Assembly (NCBI GenBank): GCA_003427395.1
Contig: BFEA01000008.1
Location: 5,570,925 to 5,634,924, forward strand
Direction of reading: 5' to 3'
Length of the DNA: 64,000 nt
DNA from: Chara braunii
Lineage: Eukaryota; Plantae; Charophyceae
Numbering within the stretch: position 1 is the first letter of the stretch; each line of letters begins with the position of its first letter. The position numbers and the translations under genes are program-made. A model generated the notes under the pieces. It searched no databases. It was given only the letters and a program-made list of their open reading frames with translations, and had not been told where the DNA came from. Positions 12,791 to 64,000 of this stretch are shown here, in pieces.

Positions 12791-13221
12791 GTGGCATTCT
12801 ATTCTCTAATGGATCAAGGGAGCCAAGTTCAGCCAACAGTTTTGTTTAAATGTAGTGGTTGGGTTCAGGATGAATGGTGGTAGCAGGCTTTGAGGTACAA
12901 GTGAGAGATGGGGCTGGCCTCCAAGTTGAACCATATGCGCTTCTCACAATGTTTTTACCTGTTTTCACTGTTTTTCAGTTCTAACTTCTAATGCAATGAA
13001 CTGGGTGTACTTCTGTTCCATCAGCCCGGAAAGGCAGCTATCGGAGTACTAAACCAGTTTATGATTAAAAAAAAAAAAAAAAAACCGGTTTATGGATTTG
13101 GTTAGTCAGTGACATCTAGGATATGGTGAGACAAAGCTCAGCATCAATAGTAGCAGCATGCTTGGAGGGTCAGGTGAGAGATGGGACAGGTCCTCTTTTT
13201 TTTTTCCTTTTTACTTCGAAG

Positions 13222-13317
13222 ATGGACCCTTTCTCAGTTTATGTGTGTCATCCTTGTGTAGGGGCCATGCTAATTGTGCCTGTCTCGTTCAATTTTTCAC
13301 GGATGTCCCACAAGACA
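13222..13317 (-). pseudogene. U6: U6 snRNA retropseudogene
   Basis: Reverse complement GGGACATCCG..AAAATTG.AACGA.ACAG...ATTAGCATGGCCCCT.C.CAAGGATGACAC.CATAAA..GAGAAA.GGTCCA aligns with plant U6. The ACAGAGA box is mutated to ACAGGCA. A-rich tail at 13196-13212; diverged about 16-bp direct repeats at about 13181 and 13317. Confidence 0.92.
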
Positions 13318-13521
13318 TGGGACCAGCCCTCTTAACCGGGCCTGATTCCACTGTTGTACTCAAAAACTTCACAGTGTAAGAATTTGATTGCAGAGAACTG
13401 GTACCAAACCATACACATGCTCATGAATATTACGATGAATGATGATCCTGCAATAGACTTGGATAGTCTTAAGAGGGATTTTTTGGTCTATTTAGAAGTT
13501 ACAACCGTCCTTCTTTTTGAG

Positions 13522-13648
13522 AAAAAGGGTCGGCAAAGCGTGCCAACCCTATTGGAGGGTTCAGAAATTCTGCCAGCCATATGTCTTGATGTCCATACAG
13601 TGCACGGCCTAAACCATGCATGGCATATATAGCCAACTGGCCCTTTTT
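13522..13648 (-). pseudogene. U11: U11 (minor spliceosome) snRNA retrocopy, near full length
   Basis: Starts AAAAAGGGC; has hairpin GCATGGTTTAGGCCGTGC, the conserved GACATCAAGA, Sm-like AATTTCTG and 3' stem GGGTTGGCA..TGCCGACCC; short A tail; exact 16-bp TSD TTACAACCGTCCTTCT at 13499-13514 and 13655-13670. Confidence 0.85.
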
Positions 13649-25679: not shown

Positions 25680-25902
25680 AATCAAAAAGAGTTGCAAACA
25701 CGAAGTGGTCCGTTCCACCAAGAGTTCATTCGATGGTGACCTAATTTACTGGAGTCTTAGGTTACAGAAACATTTGAATTAAATTCATACCATAAGAAAG
25801 AGCAAATATCAATATAGATTCCGAGAAGAGCCATATGAGGCGAAAGTCTCACGTATGGTTCGGAAGCCGAGCCATATCAGCAATGAGATGGTTTAGGTTA
25901 AC
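25680..25902 (+). ncRNA. Group II intron 3' part: maturase C-terminal remnant, domain V and domain VI
   Basis: KHEVVRSTKSSFDGDLIYWSLR remnant; DV GAGCCATATGAGGCGAAAGTCTCACGTATGGTTC at about 25828-25861; DVI ends ...TTAGGTTAAC. Confidence 0.88.
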
Positions 25903-46900: not shown

Positions 46901-48229
46901 GTCGTTAATACCTTCGCACCACCCAGGAGCTCTCCCTTCATCGTTAGGACTTGCAATGCGCAAGCGCCCACCACTCGTTCGCTTGCTGGCGCCCTCGCTG
47001 CACCTTTTGCACGTCGATGGGGCCCGCGGGCGCACTCTCCACGTTCCATGGAAGCGTTACGTTCGCGCTCAGCTGTGACGGCCCAAAGAGCACAGTAGAG
47101 AACCGTTACACATACACGCTACGTCGCCCAGCGTTCCAATGCCCACATTTTAAGCCATGGCCGCCATCACTCCTCCGCACAAACGTTTCGCCTTAGTCTC
47201 CAATCCAGCCGCCAGAACGCCTCAGGCGTAGATGCATCACAATGGAGAGTTTGAAATTCGAAATTCGAACCAGGATGTTGGCGCCCTTTTTTTTTTCGTC
47301 AGCCTGGTAGGCCTCCTCGCCGCCGCCACTGGACCACGCCCGAGGACACACGAACATCCCAGAACGATGACGAACATCCACCCCCGCAACCGCATGTATG
47401 CGTATGAAATTGGTCGTCGGAGACCTGGGACCCATCGAATTAGGACGCGGTGTAACAACGACCCCGAAAACCGAAAGTTTTTCCAAGGACTTCATCTTAA
47501 TTCCTGAGGACTTTCCAGGGAGGTTCTAACGAGGCCTTAAGCGTCTTGTCTGGTGTTTCTTACCTTTTTAGAAACTTGGTATTCCCACTTAGTATGGGCA
47601 TGCTTTCCCCACCAATCCTTTTTTTTGTTTGTTTTTTTTCCCAAATTAACACCCAGCGGTGATGTTACCCACCAATCCTTGGCTGTCGTTTTGTAGGATG
47701 GGAGATAAGGACGGCCAGAACTTGTGAATCCATTCGTTTTTTTTTGGGGACCATTTCTCAATTCATGTGTGATATCCTTGTGCAGGGGCTGGGTTCCACT
47801 TATGCCGCTTAGGTGGGCTAGGTCTTCCTTGGGCCCAATCCCTCACAAGACCCCACCCTTCTCTCGATATGCGCTGGTGCACCCCAACTCCCCTCTATCC
47901 TACCTCACTTGAGGATCGTCACTCTCTGATGGAGTGACCTGACCAGACAGCGGTCGCTGGCAGCAATGCTAAGTGGGAGCCCCCTTTCACCCTGAGTTGC
48001 GGCATTGTCGCATGACCGTCATCGTATGGGTACCTCGGGAGGTAAGTGTGAATCAATTACTACTAGCCCCATGAGTAGACCCAAGAGTGCCCCCCTCATC
48101 CAGGGTCTTTGCTTAGAGTTCCCTGCTTTGGACTAGCCCAAGCAGTGTCCAATGGCCATATGGCCAAGTTCTAACCTATGAGAGACACAAGCGGTTAAAG
48201 GGTAGCTGAAAATTCAGGAATGAAAATTA

Positions 48230-48470
48230 TGAAGTGAGAGTTTTTGGCAGTCTGAAAATCCTGAATGGTCCTGAAGTGGTGAAAGGTCTGAAGACCCTGA
48301 GAACCACCTGTTTAGGCAGGCTGCATCCTGAAGTGGTGAAGTGAGAGTTTTGGGCAGTCTGAAAATCCTGAATGGTCATAAAGCGGTGAAAGGTCCGAAG
48401 ACCCTGAAAACCACTGTTTAGGCAAACTGCATCATGAAGTGGTGAAGGGTGTCCTGAAGTGGTGATGAAA
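48230..48470. repeat. About 108-bp tandem duplication built from TCCTGAAGTGGTGAA subunits
   Basis: TGAAGTGAGAGTTTT..GCAGTCTGAAAATCCTGAATGGTC at about 48230 and 48337. Confidence 0.8.
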
Positions 48471-48887
48471 AATACGACTGTTGTTAACCTTCTTTCGTCC
48501 ACTTGATTCTATGTCTGGAGTCTTCTGTATATGTGATTGATCTATATCTCCGCACTTGGGGTCAACCCCCGGTTGTTGTATATCATTTATTTCAAAGTTG
48601 TATTAATATGACTTCCTTTTCGAATCCCTAGCCTCATGATATATGAGTCTGCATATGTCGACGGTAAATCTGCGTATGTCTGTTGTAAGCCTGCACATGT
48701 CTACTATACAACATGATCTATTATACTGGATCACACGACCAAACCTTTACATAACCCAGTAGAACCACCCTACAACCTGCCCGGCAAGGGCCCCTAGGTC
48801 AACTGTGTGACATGAAAAACGACCGTAAAAAACAAGAGAAACGAATGTAAAATGAGTTATAAAAATCGAAATTGTTCCTGCCTTTGT

Positions 48888-50105
48888 TATTGCAGCAGCT
48901 AAACACCTTGGCTTTGGATCAGTCCCCATCGTCGTCTGCCCATAGAGAAGGAATAAATACCTGGGAAACCTGCTCAATGTCGCTCTGTGATGACCTACCT
49001 GAGATTCGGCTAGCGTGTGGTTCACATGCCTTGTACCGTGAGGATTATAAAGGGATAGCCCATGCGAGTTTTTGTTTTCGTACATATGACAGTCAATACA
49101 CTTCATGTACAACACCCTGACATGTCGTTCCCAATCGGTAGACGGGCTGGAACGGCAACACCTCTACAATTGTGGTCGGCATGTCTCTGTCCTAGCATGT
49201 TGGAGCCACATGGCCTGCCTATGTTGTGCCATTCAATGCAGCAACTGTGACTGCGAGAATTTGATGCACTGCTTCCACAGTCCACACCCGAACCGGCCCT
49301 GTCCGGTTTGTAGGGGTCGGCACTTATTATAGGCAATGGCTTCTCCTCAACTCAAAATCTTATCCAACCCAAACATCGACTGTCCTCCCGTGCCATTCTA
49401 GAGTAGTTTGCTCCAGTGGTGAGTATTTAGAACCCTGTGAGAACTCCACCTCCTATTTCCTTCTTCCCCCCTCTTTTGTACTTCTCGTAAAAGCATATGG
49501 ATAAGCATCATTAAACCACCAGTACTTGGCCCAGCTATCGGCCGCGGCGCTTCCCCGTTAACGCGCCGCGGCATTTGGGCTTCGGCCTACTGGACCGCAT
49601 TGGCTGGAGGCCACTGCCAAAATGAAAACGAAAAAGACCGACGGCAGTTCTGCAGGACTTGGCACGCAGGGGGCTGCGAGGCTCGACTTCGATAGTTGGG
49701 CCAAGTACTAGTGGTTGAATATAAGTTGAAGATCTTGGGCAAAATGAACAGGAATATACCTCCACCTTTACTTTGCCTCCTTTCATGATGTGCAAGTGAG
49801 CAATTATTGCACACAGGGATGTGGGCAATTCATGCTCAACCACAATAAACGTGGCAAGCCTTTACATGAGAGGCACAGTAAACGGGGAAATGCAAGGACA
49901 AATGAAAGGGGTACCCAAAAAAGCCAGAGTCAACACAATTAAGAAAGGGATTTAAACGCTTCTATTTTGCTCAGTGTTGCTTGCTATAAAGGTAACTGCT
50001 TCATTGTTGGTCGGTTTCAAACTCAAGTGTTTTCGTTTTCTGCAATAGGACTAAAGCTGCTTTGATTTCGGATCTACTCATTTGGGTGGAATAGGGGCAA
50101 AACAC
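48888..50105 (+). mobile_element. Penelope-like element copy A (5'-truncated: RING-like units 3-4 and 3' UTR)
   Basis: Homologous to 59920-60920; ends GGATCTACTCATTTGGGTGGAATAGGGGC before CA/CAA repeats. Confidence 0.8.
49515..49715. mobile_element. MITE at a TTAA site
   Basis: TTAA|ACCACCAGTACTTGGCCCAGCTATCG ... CGATAGTTGGGCCAAGTACTAGTGGT|TGAA. Confidence 0.8.
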
Positions 50106-50109
50106 ATGC

Positions 50110-50900
50110 AACAACAACAACAACAACAACACTGATTTCAAAGCAGCGGTGACCTCCTTGACATGGCGTATGCTTGCTAGGAGCCATCCGCCCAGTGTCC
50201 TGGTCGGAGGCTGGACTGCATATGTGCGTGGCCAGCAGCGTCCGCTACCCACTCAAGTCACACGGCTCTCCAACTGGTTTTGTCGCATGGCGCGTTGATC
50301 AATTGCTCACCCGTTGCCGAATGCTCATTCTGCAGACAGGCAACATCCGCCCTCAACACAACCACTCGCAATGCGCACCTGCCCACTCCCGAACACCGAT
50401 TCCGAACACAGGCAGCATCAACCCTCCACACAGCCAAACGCAGAAGGCCCGCCATCTCTTGCCGTTACTACCGAAAGGGCGGATGCTTATGTGGATATGG
50501 CAACTCAGCTGAACACCAGACCAACCGCAAAAGACAATGGAAATGGTGTCGAAGTGCCTGTAGCAGGTGATGGCCTGCATCCTACCAATGTCGCAACTGC
50601 TGCTGAAAGCGTGCCGCCTCCTGCACCGCTACCACTGCTACCGCCACCACTGCTACCGCCACCATCTTTTCCTCCACCACCACTTCCACCACCACCACAC
50701 CACCACCACCTCCACTACCACCACCACGTGGCAGGACAATTGACAGAATGGAGTGCTGGAGCAAGTGGTGTACCACACGGTTCATCTGCTCCGCCTGGTC
50801 GTTGGCTTCATGATGATTACCTGAAGTCACCTACAGTTGGGGCCCCATCTGCTCGGCCACCTTCTTCCACAATTCACTCATAAAGCGGACATCTTTGTCA
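50110..50900 (+). mobile_element. Penelope-like element copy A2 (RT thumb and Pro-rich linker)
   Basis: NNTDFKAAVTSLTWRMLARSHPPSVLVGGWTAYVRGQQ matches 57545-57665. Confidence 0.8.
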
Positions 50901-51488
50901 CTCACTATGGGCCTCGACAACCACACACTTAGTTTTCCATGAAAAGTTTGAGCACTTGGTAAGTCTTAGCGCTCTCTAACATTGCGACTAACCTAGCGTA
51001 CTTCGAAAATCGATTCACTATGACGATGATATGCCTCTTGCCACATTTCCTGGTCAGGAGGTCATGAGGGTGTCCATGAAATCCATGGACAAGCATCCGA
51101 GTCCAGCAGGGATAGGCAATGGCTTAATAAGGCCTAGAGGTGCTTGCAATGGGTCTTTGGTTTGTCACGCTGACAAACTTGGCATGTTTCTACATAGCAC
51201 TTAGCATCCTCTACCATAGTGGGCCACAAACATCTCTGAACAAGGTTTGCTGAAGTCTTTTTATAGCCAGAGTGTTCGGTTGCATCATGACATTCGCCTA
51301 GTAACTAACTACGCAAAGACTCTCTATTTGGGACACACAGTCTTTTATTCCCAGTGTTTTCAAGGAACAGCAAACCGTCCACCACCACAAGCTCGTCAGA
51401 AGTGGCCTTGTTTTTGGCCTCGAGCTTGCGCATGATGTCTGTCACTAATGTGTCTTCCAATTAGGCATCCACCATCGGTTGAGTTAGA

Positions 51489-53210
51489 TCATGAGAAAGC
51501 CCAAACTTGGTTGTACTCACCCAAGTAATCTGCCCTACACGATAGAGGATACACAACCTTGTTGTACTCACCCTTTAGGTGCTCGAGGCAGAAGTCATAT
51601 TGATCAATGACTTTGATCCACCTCTTGAGTGCATATGAAAGAGTTGGCTGCATATTGATCCATTGCAGGGTTTCGTGGTCAGATCTCATTGTGATAAATC
51701 TACCCAAGAGATAGTGCCTCCAGTGTGTCAAGGCCTTGTAGAGGGCGTGAGGTCGCGATCATACGTAGACTTTACTAATTTTTGGGAGGGCATCTTCTTA
51801 CTCATATACTCAATCGGCCTCAACTTTTTCCCCACTTGCTGGTGGAGAACCACGCCAATGCCATATTGGCTTGCGTTAGTGGTAACAATGAAAGACTTTT
51901 TTGAATTAGGAAGTTTAAGGACTTTGTGATGCATCAGAGCATACTTCAACCGCTTGAAGGCTCTTTTGCAATCGTCTGTCCACTCCCAAGGGGTGTTAAG
52001 GCGTGTGAGATCTGCCAAGGGGGCTGCAATAGTGCTATAGTTCTTTACGAACGGGGGGTAATAACTAGTCACCCCCAAAAAGGGTCTCACCTCAGTCAGA
52101 GATTGAGGTCATGGCTAGTCCCTAATATTAGCCACCTTTGCATCTTCAGGCCTAAGGTCATCTGCGTAGATTTCATGACCCAAGTAATACGATATTGGTG
52201 CAACCAAACTCACATTTTTCCAAGTTAATCTTATTTTGGTGTTGTCGAAGGAGACCAAGCGCAATAGAAGGAGTCGTCGCCGAGTATCCAGACCTTTTCC
52301 AAGAGCTTATAGGGAGGTTGTCCATGCGATACAGATCATTTCTGGAAGCAAAGTGCCAAAGGGAAGGATCTATAGGATGACCCCTGCAGAGTTGGATGAG
52401 TTTCGTCGAGAACTAAAAGAGTTGATGGAGAATGGATGGATTCGGCCTAGCACATCTCCCTCGGTGCACCAGTTTTTTTCATTCCGAAGAAAGGGGGATC
52501 CTTGAGGATGCGCATTGATTATACAAGACTCAATGCCATCACAGTTAAGAACGTCGAGCCTCTACCCCACATTGACGACCTATTGGATACAGTGCATGAA
52601 TGAGGGTACTTCACCAATACGGCTGAGGATCAACACAAAACTGCATTTTAGGCCCGGTACAATCTGTACAAGTTTGTCGTGATGCCTTTTGGTTTGTGCA
52701 ATGCGCCGAGTACATTCCAACACGCCATAAATCGAATTTTCCATGATTACTTACAAAAGTTTATCGTTGTGTTCCTTGACGACATGCTTACCTTTAGTAA
52801 GACTGTTGAGGAGTGTTTTAACGACCTTCCCTTTTTCAGAGACAAAGACTAGATACATACCCTCCTCTTGGTTTCGCTTATAATAATTGTAGAACGACTG
52901 AGCGCACATACAACCATACGAGTCCACTAGCCTATGAGCATTGTACTTCCTAAGGCTAACAGTGGGTAACGCGGTAGCCGAGCGAGGGAGGGCCGCCGTT
53001 GATAAATCGAATTGGTGGCCCCTTTTTCGTTTGGGGTGTCCGACACTACCCGCGACCGACATATGGGAAAGGCAATTGTGGTTTAAGATTGTGAACTGAC
53101 TTACAAGATCAGAGATCAATGTCTGTTGAGCTTGCTTACTCACTCTTGTTCTCTTCCGCTTCTCTTCCACTTCTTCCTTTTTTTTTTCCTCCCTCATATT
53201 CACCTTTCCC
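51489..53210 (-). mobile_element. Ty3/gypsy pol remnant (RT-RNase H) with internal inversion
   Basis: Minus: TNASQYGIG, HWRHYLLG..SDH. Plus 52262-52812: GWIRPSTSP, MPFGLCNAPSTFQ, VFLDD. Confidence 0.9.
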
Positions 53211-54456
53211 ACTTACCCCACAGCTCTGGACTTCACCCTGTCTCTAAGGTCCCCAACCTATTCTCCCCTCAACGCCAGCCAGTGACGATTTGTTGCGGTA
53301 CGATGGAAAACCCGCCCACAATCCCATCTCTGTCTCCCATCTCTGATGTTCCCGAAGCAATGGTGATGCCTGACTCACCGCTCCCGAAATATCTCATACA
53401 AAACTATCACCCCGCAAGCGATAATCTATGCCTGACTCACTTCTCCGAAATCTCTCTTACAGAAACTTGTGCCCTCCAAACAATAATCGATGCCTATGTT
53501 GGTTGAGTACGGACACTATCTTCAATCCGCTAGTTGGTTGAATGTAGTCATGAAGCTCTATTTGAAAGTCAGCTTCAGGCTACAATTGCTGCGTGTCGGG
53601 CGGTGCCCCCATTCTTACCAACTCTTCGTGCGCGAAACAGCGCAATAACCCCCTGAGGAATACACTCATCTACAATGTTGCTCTGTTCTTCCATGCCAAA
53701 CTCGACGATGCCATGTCAATTTTACGCCCCACTCAAGATGCAGACTCTACCCTTGCATTCACAACCATGCGAGCGATGTCACCCTGATTGACAATCATAG
53801 TTGTTCAGCCAGTCAATGAACGTATCCCCACACAAAATGCACCTGTCAATGACTATGCAGGCAATGTTGCATTGTTCCTTTGGTCTGCCCGACTCAACGA
53901 TGACTTCGCTCTTCCCTCACTCTTCCTTGCTCTATGTGTGCGCTCCCCCCTTGCGTGTCCAGCCCAATTAGTGGTTTCTCCTTGATTGACAAACGATGCT
54001 GCCCTATGAAGTCGACCAAGAGTAGCTGACACAGTGCACCCTCCCATTAACCAAGAAGCAAACACCTGGCAATGGCAGGAGAGAAAACGCAATGGTCACA
54101 ACTCTGCCTGCAGTCCACGATGATGGAGGCGACGACCACTTGTGAGGATGACTATGGGTCGGTGACCCCGCCGAGGCATGGCTCGGTTCGAATGCGCTGG
54201 CAATGCCAGGCGCAACCGGAAAGGAGTTGGCCCGGACGCTGCCGGCAGCAGCTCTACCCAGCGGCGCTTGCGCAAGGTCCCAACCCTAAGTTCGAATCCT
54301 GATGTACTCCAATGAGTAAAATTATAATGCAGAATTACCTGGGCCCGGTCAGTTCCATCGTGATTTCTCAACGCTGTCCCCTTGAAAAAGAGTCACAAAG
54401 GAGAAAGAAGGAAAAGAGAATTAATTCCAACAAGAAACATTTCTACTATTTATCCG

Positions 54457-54487
54457 GCGGCCGATAGCTGGGCCAAGTACTGGTGGT
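54457..54487. mobile_element. Orphan right TIR of the TTAA MITE family
   Basis: Perfect 31-bp reverse complement of 49515-49545, followed by TTAA. Confidence 0.75.
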
Positions 54488-55122
54488 TTAAGGAGACTTT
54501 TGTCATAGGGGAGGGGTTCCGCCAACTAGATGTGGCTGGAGACTTAGCGGGCCCTTAATCTTTGGTCTTTTGTCTAGTGTTGTATTTCGCCTTGGGCACT
54601 GGGCCCTTACATTCAGAAAGGGAAAAAAAAAAAAAAAAAAGCAACGGAAAAGAGAATTAAAAAGGGAGGAGATATGGGTGCTAGAGCCTTTTCAGACAGC
54701 ATAGAGCTAAGGGCGACCATCTGTTTACTGTAGCTATTGTTCTGGTGTCAGTCTGCTCCGAACACAGTCACTTATTCTTGAGTTTGTTAAGGTTTGTTTG
54801 GTGGTTGGCTGAGTGTCACTTAGCAGTTCCTATATCATGCCTCTCCTTTTCATACTCTTGTTAAATTTACTCTTCCATAGAAGGTGTCTTTGCAGACCAT
54901 GGAGGAGTTGGGCCTCGGCGAGTTGTTCCATAGAAGATGTTGATTGTGAGCCAGAACATTCTGCTGAAGATGCCGTTCAGGGAATACTTTGCATGTAGTT
55001 GCTGCTTTCTGCAACTGTGTTCCCCTTACATTATATTTAAAACTCTCTCATCATGGCATTCCTCTTCTGTACACACACACACACACACATCATGCTTTTT
55101 TTGAGTGTATAGTGAATATGAC

Positions 55123-55192
<70 letters not shown>

Positions 55193-55499
55193 AAAGACTT
55201 CGGCCAGTCTTGAACAACAGCAACTTTTCGTTCCTTCAGGAGCCAACCTCTCTGGCACTTTGTGACTGTTTGTGAGGATTCTATTGAGTGAATTGCACTT
55301 TCAGTGTACTCTGTCATATCGCATGGTTAAGTCTTTCATTGTGTTTCTCCCTCTCTGTGCGGTGTGATACTCCCATCCTCTCCCCTTCCTTTTGTGTATG
55401 TATGGGCATACCTGGAAGTCTATGTGAGCGAGTGTTGGTCTTTTGACAACAAGCAACCAGGTTCATAACACACACACACACACACACACGTAGAGTAGT

Positions 55500-56742
55500 G
55501 ATAGTTTACCACCACCATGGCGAGCTGTTGTGGACCAAATCCTGCAGCAGCTCAACACCCTTGCTTTGGACCAATCCTCCCTGCCGTTGTCTGCCCATAT
55601 AGAGGAGTAGTAAATACTGGAGAAACCCAAGAAAGATGCTCCATGCCGCTCTGTGATGACCCGGTTGAGATTCCACTAGCATGTGGTTCGCATGCATTGT
55701 GCCATGAGGATTATGAAGGGATAGTCCATGCAAGTTTTTGCTTTCAAACGTACGGCGACAGTCAGTACTATACTCATGTACGACACCCTGACATGACATG
55801 GCCAATTTGTAGACAAGGGCTGGAACGACAATGCCGCTATAATAGGTCGACGTGCCTCAGTGCTCCTAGCATGTAGGAGCCACATAGCCTTTGACATTCG
55901 TCTGCGCCGCACAATTCGATGTCGTAACCGTGACTGCGAAAATTGGATGTAGTGCTTCCACAGTCCACACCCAAAACGGTCCTGTCCGGTCTGTAGGGGT
56001 GGCCACTTACCATAGGCAATAGCTGCTCCTCAACTCAAAATTTTAGGCAACCCAAACACTAACTGACCTCATGTGCCATTCTAGAGTTGTCTGTTCCAAT
56101 GATGAATATTTAGAATTTTGTGAACTTCGTCACATACCTCTCCCCAACCTTTTGCCATACTCTATCCTGCCCTTCACATATTTCTCTCTTGCCCTTTGCA
56201 CTCCACCTTCCCTACCCCACACTCCTATAGAACTCCACCTTCTATCCCTTTCCCTCCGCCCTCCCCTTTTGTCCTATAACACATACATACTAATGAGCAT
56301 CGTTAAGATAACAGACAATATGAAGATCTGAAGTGAAATGAACAGGAGTATGAAGACGGAGGACAAACACCAAGACTAAGTATAAGCTCAAGATCTAAAG
56401 TGAAATGAACAGGAGTATGAAGATTCGAAGTGAAATGCACAAGAGCATACCTTCCACTTTACTCCCTCCTATTATAACGTGCAAGTGGGTCGTTAAGGCA
56501 CACGGGGATATGGGCCACTGCCGCTTAACCACAATCAACGTGGGCAGCCTTACACGTGCGAGGCATTGTAAAAGAGGAGCTGTTGCCTCAAAGAAACCTC
56601 AACTAAACACAGTACTAAATTGTTCTATAATCTATTATGATTCATGTTGCTTGCTAAAGAGGTGAAATTCCGTAATTGTTGGGCTGGCTCATCTCGAATC
56701 TACTCGTCCGGGTGGATAGGGGCTGTTGTGGTGGAAGTTTAA
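55500..56742 (+). mobile_element. Penelope-like element copy B (RING-like units 3-4 and 3' UTR)
   Basis: Homologous to 59880-60900; (CA)n on both sides; same 3' terminal motif. Confidence 0.82.
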
Positions 56743-56801
56743 AACACACACACAAACAGTCTGGCACAGTCATGCTTTTTTTAGCGCATAGCGAATATGA
56801 C

Positions 56802-56869
<68 letters not shown>

Positions 56870-56870
<1 letters not shown>

Positions 56871-57750
56871 CTATGTACACGAAGCTGCCACACGACAAGA
56901 TTCTTAACAATGTTTTGAATGTTGTTCGTGAAGCACATGATTATACTGGGCGGATCACACAACGCAAAAGGCCAATACAAGATGTACATGACCATAGGAG
57001 GTCCTCGTCGTGGGGAGTGGGTTACTTCACATGGGTCAGACAACCTCTCGGTGTCAGAAATAGAGCAGCATCTGCGGTTCGTAGTCTCTAATACTTATCT
57101 TTATACGAGGGATGGCACTCTGGGCCATCAGGTGGTCGGTATCCCTATGGGCACTAACGTCGGACCATAAATTGCCAACCTCACGCTTTATTGGGACGAA
57201 GCACAATTCATCGATGATCTTCGTCAGCCAGATCTGCGTGCTGCGCAAGCATATGCATTCACATACCGATACATTGATGACATTCTATGTTGGAAGACAT
57301 CACCGCCATCTCCTGCTCGGTATGGTCTTGAATGGAAAGACACTCTTGAGCAAGATGGGTCATGTCTTTTCCTTGGGGCAAGAATCCTGGTTCGAACTGA
57401 TGGCTCACTTCGCATTGGCGTATTTGATAAGGCCGAGGCTCGGACGTTCCCTGTCATACGTTATCCCAGTGTTTCCTCCAATCCCCCGGATCATCAGCCT
57501 ACAGGCTGCTCACGGGACAACTAACGAGATTTGAACATATACATAACAATACCACCGACTTCAAAGCGGCAGTGACTTCCCTGACACGACGTATGCTTGC
57601 CAGGGGCCATCATCCCAGTGTCCTGGCTAGAGGTTGGACTGCATATGTGCGTGGCTGGCAGCGCCAACTCCCAACTCATTTCACACAACTTTCAAACTGG
57701 TTTCGCCGCAGGTTCGCTAAGCAATTGCTCACCCACTCCCAAAAGCTGAT
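56870..57750 (+). pseudogene. PLE reverse transcriptase (end of motif A to thumb)
   Basis: TMYTKLPHDKI; about 80-aa spacer; QVVGIPMGTNVGP*IANL; YRYIDD at 57264-57281; LFLGARI; VFDKAEARTFPVIRYPSVSSNPP; GQLTRF. Two frameshifts and one stop. Confidence 0.9.
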
Positions 57751-58935
57751 TCTGTGCACAGGTCCTCCACCCGATCGCACACAAGAGACCACCACTCACC
57801 GCCTGACGCCAATGTTGACTGCAGCCAGCAACAGCCCTCCGCACAATCAAACGCAGCCGGCCCCCTCCCCTGTTATCCCTGTTGAAATGGCAGACGCTAA
57901 TGTCGATACGCCAACTCAGCCAGAGACCATGCCAATTGCAATAAACAATGTAAACGTTACCGAAGTGGCTGTAAGGGATTAAAGCCAGCATCCTACAAAT
58001 ACGGCGACGGTTCTTGCTGCTGCTGAAGGTATACCTCTTCCACTGTCACTGCTGCCACCACCGCCTCCACCACCACCCCCACCACCTCCATCACTGCCAT
58101 TATCATCAACACCACCACCACGATCATCACCGCCACCGCCACCGCCACCAACGTCCTCTATTGCAGCATCCTCTCAGTCATCTGCCTCTAAGACTTCTTC
58201 TTCTTCTTCTCCCTCTTCCCCTACTTCTTCTTCCTCTTCTCCCTCTTCCTCCCCTCCCTCCGATACTTCCTCATCATCGACCTCATCATCAACGCACTCA
58301 TGGTCAGATCGGTCGTCGCAAAGGCCTTGTCGGCCGAGGCATCCGGTGTTAGATCGATCGTTACAGATGCCTCTTCGGCGGAGACGTTCCCCATTTCCAC
58401 TCCAACCTCCAAGACAGCGGCCTCATTTGTCGTTGAATGGCATGATCACCGCGCCCCCTAACGGGGTTAGAGATCTGCTCCGACGACATGCTTGCAACCA
58501 TACGGAACGACATCGTCGCTTTTAATATACACTTGCAAGGAATAGTGTACATTGAGTCCGATGCCCGCAATGTGGCGATGATTTCTCCAGTGCTACAGGC
58601 TTACAAGTGCCCCAGACACGAGGTGCAGCTACTTATGCAGCGTTCTCATGGCTAGCAGGTGCCCTGAGCACAAGTGAGGTTGATCAACTTCCAATTCTCA
58701 CATAGGGTCCACCCAGTTCTCACCCACCTGACCCGCCGCTCTCTCATCCGCCTAGCCCCGCTCGCTTCCCTGCCCCAAATGACAATGACCCGTCTCCTGA
58801 TTACCTGATGGAGCCCCCATTGAAGATCATCTCTCTAAGGAGGACATACTGGAGCCGAGTGGTCAATACCACAATGAGTCTCCCCCACCTGTGCAACCTG
58901 CAAAATCGAACGAGTCTCCGCCTGCCGTGAACTGA

Positions 58936-59385
58936 TCCCCCACGCAACCTGCGGAATCCGACAATGTCATAGCGCTACAGCAAGGGCGCTGTGCATACTA
59001 TGCCATTAATGTATGTCTCCTTGCTTGCAATTGTAATCCTTATACTGTTTCTGATTTCACAGACGTTGCTCGCTGGATAGAAGAAGAGCACCATGTCGTC
59101 TGCCCAAAGGACGACAGCGCTGCACCTGGTGTGAACAAAGAATTCCTGGCTATGGGATTTATGGGTAGGCGACTGCAATTTCAGCCTGCTCCGCAAAACC
59201 ACGTGTCAGGCAGGGATCCGAATATTCGGGCATATATCTTATATCGTCCAGGTCATTTCAGTGCTCTTACCTTTGCAGATAATTCATGGACCCTATGGGA
59301 CAATGGCGGTAGGGTGGACACAGTGGTGAATATTAACTCTGTCTATCACCAAATGCTAGAGGATCACTCAGTCTGGCTCGTCCAA
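58936..59385 (+). CDS. Josephin-like (MJD/ataxin-3-type) cysteine protease domain
   Basis: Open frame: LQQGRCAYYAIN..YTVSDFTDVARWIEEE..DPNIRAYILYRPGHFSALTFADNSWTLWDN. C at 58990, H at 59254, D at 59299; H-D spacing 15 aa as in ataxin-3 H119-N134. Confidence 0.72.
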
Positions 59386-59387
59386 AT

Positions 59388-60395
59388 GGTGGTTGTGCCC
59401 TCCCGTTGTGTCGTTGCAAAGGTGCAGTTCGGTTGGCATGTACATGGCATAGCCTCTGCTCCGAACACTATGAAGGGATGGTCGCTGCTAGCCTCTCACA
59501 CGAAAACTGTGATCCCCTGTCCTGTGCTCATCTCCCCCACCCCCTGATTACTTGCCCAGCATGCCATTGGGGCCTTGATCTGCCATGCTTAAATAACTGT
59601 GCACGTCAGCCGTCCATACCAATGACATGTCAGCAACATGCCATGTGTCGTCAATGCTTCCAGGAAGCTGTCATAGAAAGTATGTGTCTTTACCGCGTGG
59701 ACTATACCCGGTGCCATCACCCTCCACATCCTCTCCTAACATGTCCCACATGCGGTGTTGGTCATACACCTGTGGCAACTGCTGGTGGATCTCCCTCTTT
59801 CTTGCCAGATGAACGACAGACACAGCAGTCCGAGGAGGAAAATAGACTTCTATATGAATCACCGGCAGAGCAATGTGCTCATAGTTTATCACCACCAGGG
59901 CGAGCTGTTGCGGACCAAATCCTGCAGCAGCTGAACGCCCTTGCTTTGGACCGATCCTCCCTGTCGTCGTCTCCCGATAGAGAAGGAATAAATACTGAGG
60001 AAGCCCAAGAAAGATGCTCCATGCCGCTTTGTGATGACCCGCCGTCGATTCAACTAGCATGTGGTTCACATGCCTTGTGCTGTGAGGATTATGAAGGGAT
60101 AGTCCTTGCCAATTTTTGCTTCCACACGTACAACGACAGTCAGTACTGTACTCATGTACGGCACCCTGACATATCATGTCCAATTTGTAGACAAGGGCTG
60201 GAACGGCAATGCCTCTATAATTGTGGTCGACGTTACTCTGTGTTTCTAGCATGTAGAAGCCACGTAGCCTGTGACATCTGTCTGCGCCGCACCATTCGAT
60301 GCAGCAACTGTGACTGCGAAAATTGGATGCGGTGCTTCCATAGTCCACACCCGAACCAGTCCTGTCCGGTCTGTAGGGGTGGCCACTTGCCATAG
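59388..60395 (+). CDS. Four tandem RING-like Cys/His fingers (open frame over 329 aa)
   Basis: Units C-x3/4-C-x8/9-C-x2-H-x2-C-x2-[CHD]-x27/29-CPxC ending CPAC, CPTC, CPIC and CPVC. Confidence 0.75.
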   Translation, partial: GGCALPLCRCKGAVRLACTWHSLCSEHYEGMVAASLSHENCDPLSCAHLPHPLITCPACHWGLDLPCLNNCARQPSIPMTCQQHAMCRQCFQEAVIESMCLYRVDYTRCHHPPHPLLTCPTCGVGHTPVATAGGSPSFLPDERQTQQSEEENRLLYESPAEQCAHSLSPPGRAVADQILQQLNALALDRSSLSSSPDREGINTEEAQERCSMPLCDDPPSIQLACGSHALCCEDYEGIVLANFCFHTYNDSQYCTHVRHPDISCPICRQGLERQCLYNCGRRYSVFLACRSHVACDICLRRTIRCSNCDCENWMRCFHSPHPNQSCPVCRGGHLP

Positions 60396-60927
60396 GCATT
60401 AACTGGTCCTCAACCCGACATTTTTTTTTTTGCAACCGTGTGCCATTCTAGAGTAGTCTGTTCCAGCGTTGAATGTTTAGAACTATCCCTTTCCCTCCAC
60501 CCTTCCCGCCACTCCCTTTGTGCTACTAATAAATACATACGAATGAGCATCGTTAGGAGAACAGACAATATGAAGATCAGAAATGAAATGAATGGAAATA
60601 TGAAGATGAAGGACAGACACTAAGACTGTATAAGCTGAAGATCTGAAGTGACATGAACAGGAGTATGAAGGTCTGAAGAGAAATGCACAGGAGCATACCT
60701 TCCGTTCTACTCTGCCTCCTGAAATAACGTGCAAGTGGGCCGTGAAGGCACACGGGGATGTGGGCAGCTGCCGCTCAACCACAATCAACGTGGGCAACCT
60801 TGCACGTAAGAGGCACAGTAAAAGGGGAGTGGCACAAGCAATGGAAGGGGTACCCCAAGGACAACCAAAAAAACTGTCTAATTGTAAAATTGCTTTAATA
60901 TGTTGGACTGTGACTGTCTCATCTTAA

Positions 60928-61018
60928 ACCACCAGTACCTCCCCGTTGTTTTTTTGAAGTCGCGGCCGTTAACGCACCGCGACTTTCGGGGGTCGGGCAA
61001 GCCAACGCCCCGTCGCTT

Positions 61019-61071
<53 letters not shown>

Positions 61072-61610
61072 NNNNNNNNNNNNNNNNNNNNNNNNNNNNN
61101 NNNNNNNNNNNNNNNNNNNNNNNNNNNNNNNNNNNNNNNNNNNNNNNNNNNNNNNNNNNNNNNNNNNNNNNNNNNNNNNNNNNNNNNNNNNNNNNNNNNN
61201 NNNNNNNNNNNNNNNNNNNNNNNNNNNNNNNNNNNNNNNNNNNNNNNNNNNNNNNNNNNNNNNNNNNNNNNNNNNNNNNNNNNNNNNNNNNNNNNNNNNN
61301 NNNNNNNNNNNNNNNNNNNNNNNNNNNNNNNNNNNNNNNNNNNNNNNNNNNNNNNNNNNNNNNNNNNNNNNNNNNNNNNNNNNNNNNNNNNNNNNNNNNN
61401 NNNNNNNNNNNNNNNNNNNNNNNNNNNNNNNNNNNNNNNNNNNNNNNNNNNNNNNNNNNNNNNNNNNNNNNNNNNNNNNNNNNNNNNNNNNNNNNNNNNN
61501 NNNNNNNNNNNNNNNNNNNNNNNNNNNNNNNNNNNNNNNNNNNNNNNNNNNNNNNNNNNNNNNNNNNNNNNNNNNNNNNNNNNNNNNNNNNNNNNNNNNN
61601 NNNNNNNNNN

Positions 61611-61670
<60 letters not shown>

Positions 61671-62632
61671 GGCGCGATGCAGTCCGTTTTTCTCAATTTC
61701 GTTTTCCTTCTTCCTTTTTTTTTTGGGGGGCAAGTACGTTTATATCACCTTTTGGTTTCGAAAGGGCAAAAAAAACACGAATGGGCAACGAAAAAATGGC
61801 TGTAGTTTGAAAAGGCGGTAACATCAGGCCCCGAGTTCGAAAAGGCAGAAATACCGCATTTTTCGGTCGGTCGGTCGCCCGCCCGCCGTGCCGCGCCGCG
61901 GCTAAAAAAAAAAAAAAAAAAAAAAAAACATGGTCGGGCCACGGCCATGGGGTGTGGCCGAGAGATCTCGGCTGTGGCCAATCTGGGGTGTGGCCGAGAG
62001 ATCTCGGCTGTGGCCAATCTGGGGTGTGGCCGAGACATCTCGGCCGTGGCCAATCTGGGGTGTGGCCGAGACATCTCGGCCGTGGCCAATCTGGGGTGTG
62101 GCCGAGACATCTCGACCGTGGCCAATCTGGGGTGTGGCCGAGACATCTCGGCCATGGCCAATGTGGGGTGTGTGGGCCGAGACATCTCGGCCGTGGCCCA
62201 ACCTTGGGGCTGGTTTTGTTCTTTCCAGCCGCGGCACGGCGCGCGTCGGATCGACAAAAAAAAAAAAAAAAAGAAAAAAAAAAAGGCCTACAAAATGCGG
62301 TATTTCTGCCTTCTCGAACTCGGGGCCTGATGTTACCGCCTTTTGCTGTTATTTCTGCCTTTTCGAACTACGGCCATTTTTTCATTGCCCATTTATGTTT
62401 TTTTTGCCTTTACAGTTCGAAAGTGTGGTACTACCGCACTTGTTTCTTTTTCTTTTTTTGAAAGTTTTCTTTGTTTTTTCGTTTGTTTTTTATTTTACTT
62501 TGTTCACATTTATTGTAAAGAAATTTTGATGTCCTCGAAGTACCGGTACTTCGAGGCTCGTCACCGTAGCTGTAGGTTACGCCTACCGGTAGCTTTAGGG
62601 TCGGGCCTTGACAACCGGTAGGTACTGGTGGT
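60928..62632. mobile_element. TTAA-flanked non-autonomous DNA transposon with internal foldback and minisatellite; spans a gap
   Basis: TTAA|ACCACCAGTACCT ... AGGTACTGGTGGT|TTAA; the PLE 3' UTR resumes after it. Confidence 0.8.
61945..62200. repeat. 36-bp palindromic minisatellite, about 7 copies
   Basis: TGGGGTGTGGCCGAGACATCTCGGCCGTGGCCAATC; no spacers. Confidence 0.93.
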
Positions 62633-62725
62633 TTAAATGCTCTCGTTGTCTGCAATAGGACAAAGACTGCTTTGATTCTGAATCTATTCATCTGGGTGGA
62701 ATTGGGGCTGTTGTGGGGAAAATCT

Positions 62726-62728
<3 letters not shown>

Positions 62729-62810
<82 letters not shown>
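62729..62810. repeat. (CA)n(GA)n microsatellite
   Basis: Direct inspection. Confidence 0.95.
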
Positions 62811-62812
<2 letters not shown>

Positions 62813-64000
62813 GGCAGTTGGCAGACTGCGGCTAAACAGTCTGTGCAGCCCTAGCAATGTTACACACACGAAATCGAGTCCATCAAAACCGCATGTGAAC
62901 ATGCATGTAAAAAGCTGCGAAGAGAGCAACCAGTGGATTCCCTCTACCAGTTTCACCCGCCCACACGGGATCCTCAGGAGGGTGGCTCTGGCACAGAGCC
63001 TTCATGCTCGAAAAAGGGAGACTGAAGCCATGCCTCTCGCAATATATAGTGTCCTTTTCCGGGTCATATTCCTCCTCGCCCCCTATCCGGAATCAAGAAG
63101 GCCGCTCCCCTTGGTCCAAGAACTAAAATCAGTAAAACACGAGACCTGCCGAATTAGGCTCCTACTGACGTTCGGCGAGCTCCGACGACTGTTCACTCCG
63201 CAATGTATCTACCCTAAGAGGGTGCCCATCTCCATTCTTAACATCCCAGATTTCGTCATACTGCAAGAACCCTCTACCTACCACTACCGCCAAAAAGGGC
63301 CCTACTGGCCGGTCATGTACCCCCAGTCCTACACCTACTCTGTTCCCTACCTCCTTTCCGATAATATCCGTTCCGCAGCCCTCCGAAAATACGAATCGAG
63401 ACAAAATTCAAAACGCAAAATCACAGGCCCTGGAAAATAAAATACAGTCACAGGAGCATACGTGTGATCTTCCCCATTGGACTGTCCGCCAGGGAGTCAG
63501 TCTACTGACGGGAGTTTCCCAAAAAAGTGATCTGCTGTAGCCTCCTGGCGATGTGCACAATACGAAAGGCAGTGAGCAAAGTGCGTAGTGCTCGCTTGGA
63601 CACAGCCTTGACCAAATTGGCCAGGGCTCCGAGAGAGACATCCGAGGGGTAACTCCGGACGTCTGCTTCACAAACGGCGAAAGCGATGGCCCCCAGTACA
63701 AGTTCCTTACTCGTTGCCTAGTCCCACAGCCTCCTAATCGTTGTCGTCAACACGACCTTCTTGACACACTTTGCGGAGTAGGACTTGTAATCCTGCATTG
63801 TTTGAAAAAGAAGTTGCCCGTTCACATTAAGACTTTCTGAGTTCTTAGTACTCAGTATGGAGTGGAGTCGAAGAGGGGATCTGCAGATCATCATCTCCCC
63901 TCCCACGAACTGCCATGTCGTACCACATTCATCCTTCCGTACAATCTCCAGATTCTTATCATAGATCCCCTTGGAGGCTTCAAACAGGTCCTCGTGCAAT

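Follow-up and report, generated by a model that had tools for sequence, protein, structure and literature searches.

The question raised by this stretch of Chara braunii DNA (contig BFEA01000008.1, positions 5,570,925 to 5,634,924 of the forward strand; 64,000 nt in all, referred to below as the window) is whether a Penelope-like reverse transcriptase (RT), a Josephin-like protease and four cysteine- and histidine-rich (Cys/His-rich) units lying one behind the other belong to a single retroelement and, if so, whether such an element had been described before. The original prediction, made for positions 56868-60395, had read them as a Penelope-like element (PLE) of undescribed architecture that could edit ubiquitin. 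Our analysis indicates that the stretch is very probably a dead, 5'-truncated copy of a high-copy PLE of the Chlamys group, of the Chlamys-1_cBra type or a close subfamily, which entered a (CA)n microsatellite through target-primed reverse transcription and now lies within a head-to-tail array of similarly truncated copies. All coordinates are positions within the window. This main copy was read by three-frame translation of 56600-60500 together with a motif search, and all searches were run with natural pieces only, neither a consensus nor a repaired reading frame being used. The predicted order of PLE RT, linker, C2H2-like motif, Josephin-like domain and four units was recovered on the plus strand, with every motif at or close to the place first assigned to it (Table 1).

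The RT motifs were found in order, with MYTKLPHDK (the tail of motif A) at 56873, GIPMGTN at 57138, YRYIDD at 57264 and FLGARI at 57369, followed by GVFDK...FPVIRYP...SNPP at 57417-57488 and then by the thumb up to 57979. The core of a PLE-type RT (motifs B, C, D, E and thumb) is present at the level of motifs and language-model features, those of the RT piece 57171-57521 grouping with animal PLE-type RT fragments that carry PF26215/RVT_1 (0.92-0.96). An intact relative of 183 aa (P0003), which is 58% identical to the window RT piece, carries a precomputed weak PF26215 match and reads straight through the site of the window frameshift near 57510. The distance from the motif A tail (56873) to GIPMGTN (57138) is about 87 aa across one frameshift, which seems long; this spacing would be compatible with an insertion-in-fingers domain. 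Because the 5' truncation falls within RT motif A, at 56869, the part that in Chlamys elements holds an N-terminal GIY-YIG endonuclease lacking CCHH, the CxC motif between endonuclease and RT and the DK(G) motif of the N-terminal RT lies outside the copy, as it does in the relatives retrieved, and tblastn and blastn searches within the window returned solely 5'-truncated copies. As predicted, no C-terminal GIY-YIG was found: unit B2 is the last part of the open reading frame (ORF), whose stop lies at 60393-60395, and beyond this stop comes a 3' untranslated region (UTR) common to other copies. An Rfam scan of 48000-64000 at E<=1 revealed no hammerhead, nor any other Rfam family. The proposed placement among Chlamys/Naiad-type PLEs was upheld by the ordered RT motifs, the lack of a C-terminal endonuclease and the (CA)n junctions.

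The reading path through the main copy changes frame four times (0 to 1 near 57010, 1 to 0 near 57510, 0 to 2 near 58800-58930 and 2 to 1 near 59385) and crosses six in-frame stops (57168, 57980, 58523, 58553, 58703 and 58933). Two of the frameshifts and the stops at 57168 and 57980 break the RT piece, while the stop at 58933 lies just upstream of the Josephin-like domain and a frameshift falls at the end of that domain. With at least four frameshifts and six in-frame stops the main copy is therefore dead, a retroelement without function of its own. All four Cys/His units lie within one open frame of 352 codons (59337-60392), closed by TAG at 60393-60395. The element exceeds the interval first proposed for it, as its 3' UTR runs on to 60908 and resumes at 62633-62743, where the 3' terminus matches the termini of two of the further copies described below, copy A (50025-50098) and copy C (56696-56758), at 82-83% identity. 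The UTR is split by a foreign insertion of about 1.7 kb plus an assembly gap (60909-62632), and RNA reads which leave the window sequence at 60908 go on with sequence present at 62633.

Comparison of the window with itself by blastn and tblastn revealed three further copies, all on the same strand as the main copy. Each of the four copies has a different 5' truncation point and each is flanked by (CA)n or (CAA)n, the (CA)33 tract at the 5' junction of the main copy doubling as the tail tract of the upstream copy C. Copies A and C have the same 3' UTR as the main copy (75-85% identity). Copy B, which is 69% identical to 57545-58150 in DNA and 45% in protein, repeats the junction of the RT thumb with the Pro-rich run. 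The array of truncated head-to-tail copies spans 48.9-62.8 kb. The depth of DNA contigs at least 95% alike was about 2,000 from the RT as far as the Josephin domain, climbing to 8,000-30,000 over the units and the UTR (unique contigs, about 11-16), summed contig depth being no exact copy number. A rise of this kind towards the 3' end is what a very abundant family whose copies are often 5'-truncated should give.

Outside the genome few relatives were found. When the 352-aa zinc ORF was searched exhaustively with HMMER against 1.84 billion representative proteins, only two short metagenomic fragments were returned, P0001 and P0002, which lie on contigs of about 1.1 kb (L002 and L001, respectively) from a single ENA assembly. 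L001 encodes in one frame a Ser/Pro-rich stretch, a protease-like domain, unit A and the start of unit B, with one stop between units A and B. L002 contains a protease-like domain, units A-B, a stop and then, after 9 nt, a block 78% identical to 60697-60830 in the 3' UTR of the main copy. Judged by sequence, the order of linker, protease, units and 3' block recurs in lineages that are 30-40% identical in protein to the window. In a word-indexed protein search the Josephin piece had no match and P0002 matched only itself; metagenome scans with P0002 and with a pattern from the conserved 3' block returned no match, and a megablast of the whole main copy against a phage collection likewise gave none.

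These data bear on whether an RT fragment and a Josephin/zinc segment from two unrelated repeats, or a host gene, could have come to lie side by side by chance. A single window copy spans the junction of linker and Josephin domain and the DNA depth is uneven between bins (320 at 58801-58938, 8,640 at 58939-59076), as chance nesting might give; yet all the parts are on the same strand with no terminal structures between them, the natural contigs L001 and L002 join linker, Josephin domain, units and 3' block, and a depth of about 2,000 runs unbroken from the RT into the Josephin domain. Tail-only copies moreover share the UTR and the microsatellite ends, as expected of 5'-truncated retrocopies, and the description of a published single ORF shows the same order (PMC8557442). 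We consider chance nesting very improbable. The same-strand copies, the natural contigs and the continuous depth bear out the earlier proposal of one ancestral ORF, and both the RT and the Josephin/zinc tail are parts of a single element.

That published ORF also answers the second part of the question. The original prediction held the architecture to be undescribed for PLEs, and this was contradicted by the work of Craig, Yushenova, Rodriguez and Arkhipova (2021, Mol Biol Evol 38:5005; PMC8557442), who defined the Naiad/Chlamys clade. In their description, Chlamys-1_cBra of C. braunii has ORFs about 1,800 aa long, and these end in a C-terminal extension which holds a weak Josephin motif, for which the comparison with Dualen is drawn, and an unknown Cys/His-rich motif. 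Chlamys elements are described there as often targeting (CA)n, mostly without hammerheads and very abundant in C. braunii. The RT-Josephin-Cys/His architecture was thus already annotated for a known family and published in 2021 for the very species studied here.

The window family resembles Chlamys-1_cBra in having, C-terminal to the RT, an extension that holds a weak Josephin and a second, Cys/His-rich motif, in lacking a C-terminal GIY-YIG and a canonical hammerhead, and in its (CA)n bias, 5' truncation, tandem arrays and very high number of copies. The main copy measures about 1,175 aa between motif A and the stop, and addition of the missing N-terminal part would, by estimate, bring it in line with an ORF of about 1,800 aa. 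No difference from Chlamys-1_cBra was seen, the comparison being with its published description and not with a consensus sequence, and this has to be counted against our assignment. Four further points weigh on the same side: no full-length copy was read and the N-terminal GIY-YIG and CxC that define Chlamys were not seen; Pfam fails to recognise the window's own RT and Josephin pieces, a search of nine window pieces giving no match except a sub-threshold C2H2 (E 0.051); the zinc units are without profile or fold support as RINGs; and within the window the linker-to-Josephin junction is bridged by one copy only.

A second known system with a comparable accessory domain is the Dualen/RandI group of non-LTR (long terminal repeat) retrotransposons, which carry a Josephin-like cysteine protease (Kojima and Fujiwara 2005, as cited in PMC8557442) proposed to interfere with protein degradation (PMC8557442). 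As described, these differ in being long interspersed nuclear elements with two endonucleases and not PLEs, and Cys/His-rich units are unreported in that description. As a discovery the locus matters little, the architecture being published and the copy dead. What the analysis does is to firm up the published weak Josephin homology, in that the Pfam cut-off is reached in an intact relative, the predicted fold is Josephin-like and the catalytic residues are kept. The analysis also adds two small points, namely that the zinc units go back to an old AB-AB duplication and that a non-coding block of the 3' UTR is strongly conserved.

The Josephin-like domain has its catalytic candidates at 58990-58992 (Cys), 59254-59256 (His) and 59299-59301 (Asp). 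The window's own piece had no Pfam match. Its homologue P0002, with which it shares 31% identity, matched Pfam Josephin (PF02099) over residues 40-195 with 27.1 bits (cut-off 26, E 4e-6) and as a whole with 25.2 bits. PDB sequence searches with a profile of the Josephin alignment and with P0002 gave nothing meaningful. By its language-model features the domain falls with papain-like peptidases, Josephin among them. The window, P0002 and L002 represent three lineages about 30% identical, and in their alignment no change is seen at the Cys, at the His of PGH[FY] or at the Asp of W-x-L-W-D; the triad was assigned from the alignment of these three sequences.

Structure modelling followed by Foldseek had been proposed for both 58936-59385 and 59388-60395. 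An AlphaFold2 model of the first of these, the window's own Josephin domain (four-row alignment), was of moderate confidence (predicted local distance difference test, pLDDT, 61; predicted template modelling score, pTM, 0.59) and showed two helices followed by a six-stranded sheet. The first four PDB matches in Foldseek were all ataxin-3 Josephin (prob 0.99-1.0, E 3e-3 to 1e-2). VIA-align ranked Josephin-2 6pgv first (Z 10.4, 129 residues aligned, root-mean-square deviation 3.5 A), with ataxin-3 1yzb at Z 9.3 and 3o65 at Z 8.5; the next families were herpesvirus-tegument-like and USP deubiquitinases, at Z 7.7 and below. The assignment of 58936-59385 as a Josephin-like domain is supported by the alignment and by this model, and the prediction of such a domain with intact Cys, His and Asp agrees with the homologue's Pfam match, with the first place of Josephin in both structural comparisons and with the triad kept in three lineages. 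The domain shares with the Josephin deubiquitinases (ataxin-3, Josephin-1/2) a predicted papain-like fold, a Cys with which the first long helix begins and a His followed by a W-x-x-W-D motif, in which the acid stands 15 residues after the His. It differs in being only 13-16% identical to solved Josephins, in being embedded in a retrotransposon polyprotein, and in its third residue, which is Asp in the window domain and Asn in ataxin-3. Since the aligned triad is kept across diverged lineages, active elements probably need the catalytic activity of the domain, that is, a working hydrolase of the ubiquitin type.

Upstream of the protease, the Pro/Ser-rich linker has a counterpart in the Ser/Pro-rich stretch that also precedes the Josephin domain in L001. 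The degenerate C2H2 finger of the original prediction held up in part. The C-x2-C-x3-F-x5-L portion is kept in 58562-58612, whereas the sequence there departs from the consensus C-x2-C-x12-H-x3-H, both histidines being replaced (by Pro and Gly in CPQCGDDFSSATGLQVPQTRG), and the match to Pfam zf-C2H2_4 stayed below threshold (E 0.051, 14.7 bits, cut-off 27). An Arg-rich motif (RRRRS..L..PRQ.RP) precedes the Josephin Cys by about 15 aa in L001 and by about 190 aa in the window (58380-58440). An insert of about 175 aa, the C2H2-like motif included, may thus have been acquired by the window family; the Arg-rich similarity is low-complexity and may be due to chance.

Alignment of nine of the Cys/His-rich units from three lineages gave 10 near-invariant Cys/His columns and an eleventh that is partly kept, in the pattern C-x(2-4)-C-x9-C-x2-H-x2-C-x2-[C/H/D]-x(9-13)-C-x(9-11)-C-x-H-x2-H-P-x4-C-x2-C. 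Eight of the positions fit the RING-HC consensus save for the variable first pair: ligands 2-8 fit in all nine units, and the first Cys floats 2-4 residues before the second, where RING-HC E3 fingers have a fixed spacing of 2. The units share with these fingers the order and most spacings of the eight candidate ligands and a helix predicted after the fifth, and they differ further in an extra C...C-x-H-x2-H-P block between ligands 6 and 7, four additional positions making up a possible third zinc site. No Pfam zinc-finger family matched the 352-aa ORF at E<=1 or P0001:60-197 at E<=5, and a profile of the units against PDB sequences gave one chance-level deaminase match only. Of the four RING-like units originally proposed there remain four homologous Cys/His units with RING-like spacing; the RING profile match is missing. 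The modelling proposed for 59388-60395 was run on units A1-B1 (9 rows) and showed no confident RING fold, the model being unusable (pLDDT 44, pTM 0.29). When it was nevertheless passed to Foldseek the top seven matches were RING domains, RNF4, Pirh2 and TRIM32 among them, at E 0.3-1.5 and prob <=0.2, and we take them as a weak hint only. The RING reading of the units is drawn from their Cys/His spacing only.

The published Cys/His motif, left unnamed in the description of the family, resolves in the window family into four homologous units of about 60 aa arranged A-B-linker-A-B. The second AB pair is 41% identical to the first, about as far as either is from the metagenomic AB pair, and the linker before A2 is also found in copies C (55494-55607) and A (48929 onwards), which makes it a family feature. 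In the window family the four units thus reflect a duplication that is old and has become fixed. The L002 lineage has two units (A-B) before its stop, compared with four here.

What protease and units might do together can be read in several ways. They could form a ubiquitin-editing pair in which the Josephin domain is a deubiquitinase and the four units are RING E3 domains, acting jointly on the ribonucleoprotein particle (RNP) or on chromatin, as the original prediction had it. This we regard as unlikely. In its favour are the Josephin fold with its conserved triad, a unit spacing (C-x(2-4)-C-x9-C-x2-H-x2-C-x2-[C/H/D]-x(~30)-C-x2-C) which fits RING-HC except in the first pair, and a beta-beta-alpha element after the third ligand in the low-confidence model; the seven RING rows from Foldseek would add to these, but with such E values and probabilities from a model of that quality they count for little. 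The searches of Pfam zinc-finger families and PDB sequences speak against the pair, the 11-12 conserved ligand positions per unit permit other zinc topologies, and the family's curators gave the motif no name in their description of it (PMC8557442). Were the units RING ligases, both halves of a ubiquitin-editing system would be encoded by one retrotransposon, a rare case, and one that would help in studying how PLEs cope with protein turnover in the host. The strongest form of this idea, that the motif consists of real RINGs with a third zinc site, that the pair with Josephin is required for retrotransposition, and that the four-unit form and the conserved block of 134 nt are undescribed functional features, is distinctly unlikely.

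Alternatively, the units could be nucleic-acid-binding or RNP-assembly zinc modules, used in the choice of microsatellite or in handling element RNA, with the Josephin domain acting alone as a deubiquitinase or as a protease that processes the polyprotein. Three potential zinc sites per unit without a RING profile match would suit such modules, as would the low-complexity linkers between them, which are of the kind seen in polyproteins, and zinc motifs of PLEs have been proposed to guide microsatellite targeting (PMC8557442). We nevertheless consider this rather doubtful, because the structures closest to the protease all belong to enzymes that act on ubiquitin and none to a polyprotein protease, the spacing of the units is nearer to RING than to known DNA-binding fingers, and no cleavage sites or separate products are known.

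The reading that we tentatively prefer, at somewhat less than an even chance, is that the Josephin domain would remove ubiquitin or a ubiquitin-like modifier from the element protein, the RNP or the insertion site, and that the zinc units would be interaction modules. An intact element would encode one long protein made up of N-terminal GIY-YIG and CxC, RT, linker, Josephin protease and zinc modules A-B-linker-A-B. Once the element is transcribed, its protein would, to go by the published biology of the family, nick a microsatellite by means of the N-terminal GIY-YIG, and the element RNA would be copied by target-primed reverse transcription, early stops giving rise to a 5'-truncated head-to-tail array. 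In active copies the Josephin domain may be a deubiquitinase-like hydrolase which shields the element protein or RNP from ubiquitin-dependent removal or edits ubiquitin at the insertion site, and the zinc units may serve as RING-like protein-interaction modules. The conserved 3' block could act as an RNA signal recognised by the RT.

This block (60697-60830, about 134 nt) is 78% identical to L002:914-1045, where the adjacent coding sequence is about 38% identical in protein. Copies of it occur within the window at 56448-56579 and 49742-49888, with 74-85% identity among the window copies, and its conservation between distant lineages thus equals that within the window. A coding role for the block was considered and rejected, as its variable columns showed no codon periodicity (16/16/18). 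In an alifold consensus of four sequences the outer stem is mostly invariant with only two compensatory pairs, and the single-sequence structure z-scores were -3.4, -0.7 and +1.1. Its conservation suggests that the block is probably a cis-acting RNA signal recognised by the RT.

Three oligo-dT RNA runs from the same species gave thin coverage of the main copy, by reads mostly 95-99% alike, on both strands and biased to the 3' end, and 37-49% of the RNA reads on the main copy continue into unlike sequence. The reads of these three runs gave no evidence for independent transcription of the main copy or of an intact element; fragments of the family occur within transcripts. The reads over unit B1 (59491-59766) were strongly one-sided in two of the three runs, with the first mate on the plus strand. 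In most stranded libraries a first mate on the plus strand corresponds to antisense RNA. Variants in these reads (59597 C>A, 59650 G>C, 59653 A>G and 59748 A>G) were absent or nearly absent from DNA contigs, and the reads probably come from one diverged copy inside another transcript.

Table 1. Features of the main copy and of the three further copies of the element in the window
Feature	Position	Strand	Basis or remark
(CA)33 microsatellite, insertion target; 5' junction of main copy	56804-56869		Regex scan and repeat finder
5'-truncated Penelope-like RT, motif A tail to thumb	56873-57979	+	Translation, motif positions
Pro/Ser-rich low-complexity linker	57983-58522	+	Translation
Degenerate C2H2-like motif CPQCGDDFSSATGLQVP	58562-58612	+	Direct reading
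Josephin-like (putative papain-fold) cysteine protease domain, 150 aa	58936-59385	+	Homologue profile, alignment, model
Cys/His-rich units A1 (from 59394) and B1 (from 59580), about 60 aa each	59394-59765	+	
Linker of about 82 aa separating the two AB pairs	59766-60014	+	Translation
Cys/His-rich units A2 (from 60015) and B2 (from 60204), and stop	60015-60395	+	
3' UTR, first part, with conserved non-coding block 60697-60830	60396-60908	+	
3' terminus of main copy, then (CA)15(GA)25 at 62730-62809	62633-62743	+	
Copy C: linker, A2-B2, 3' UTR	55501-56760	+	83-89% identity to 59881-60829; between (CA)n tracts
Copy A: A2-B2, 3' UTR, then (CAA)7	48891-50100	+	About 75% identity to 59923-60858
Copy B: from RT thumb, just after (CAA)7, into Pro-rich linker	50122-50760	+	

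Several minor observations concern the array. Copy B is cut after its Pro-rich linker by a fragment of an LTR retrotransposon on the minus strand (50900-52100; RT_RNaseH_2, E 2e-21, at 51731-52090). At two copy junctions (55071-55131 and 56744-56810, 81% identity) a piece of about 45 nt (CATGCTTTTTTT..ATAG.GAATATGACAA) has a (CA)n run on either side; either an additional tail segment of the element or local duplication in tandem could account for it. The insert that splits the 3' UTR at 60909-62632 contains poly(A)-tailed repeats (A-runs at 61020, 61904 and 62256) and an N gap, a 36-bp tandem repeat of at least six units (61912-62199) and a 53-nt inverted repeat, 98% complementary (61810-61862 and 62292-62344).

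Elsewhere in the window, matches to U6 and U11 small nuclear RNA at the Rfam gathering level lie 200 nt apart on the minus strand (13216-13323 and 13522-13648). A group II intron domain match on the plus strand at 25826-25902 possibly marks an insert of organelle DNA.

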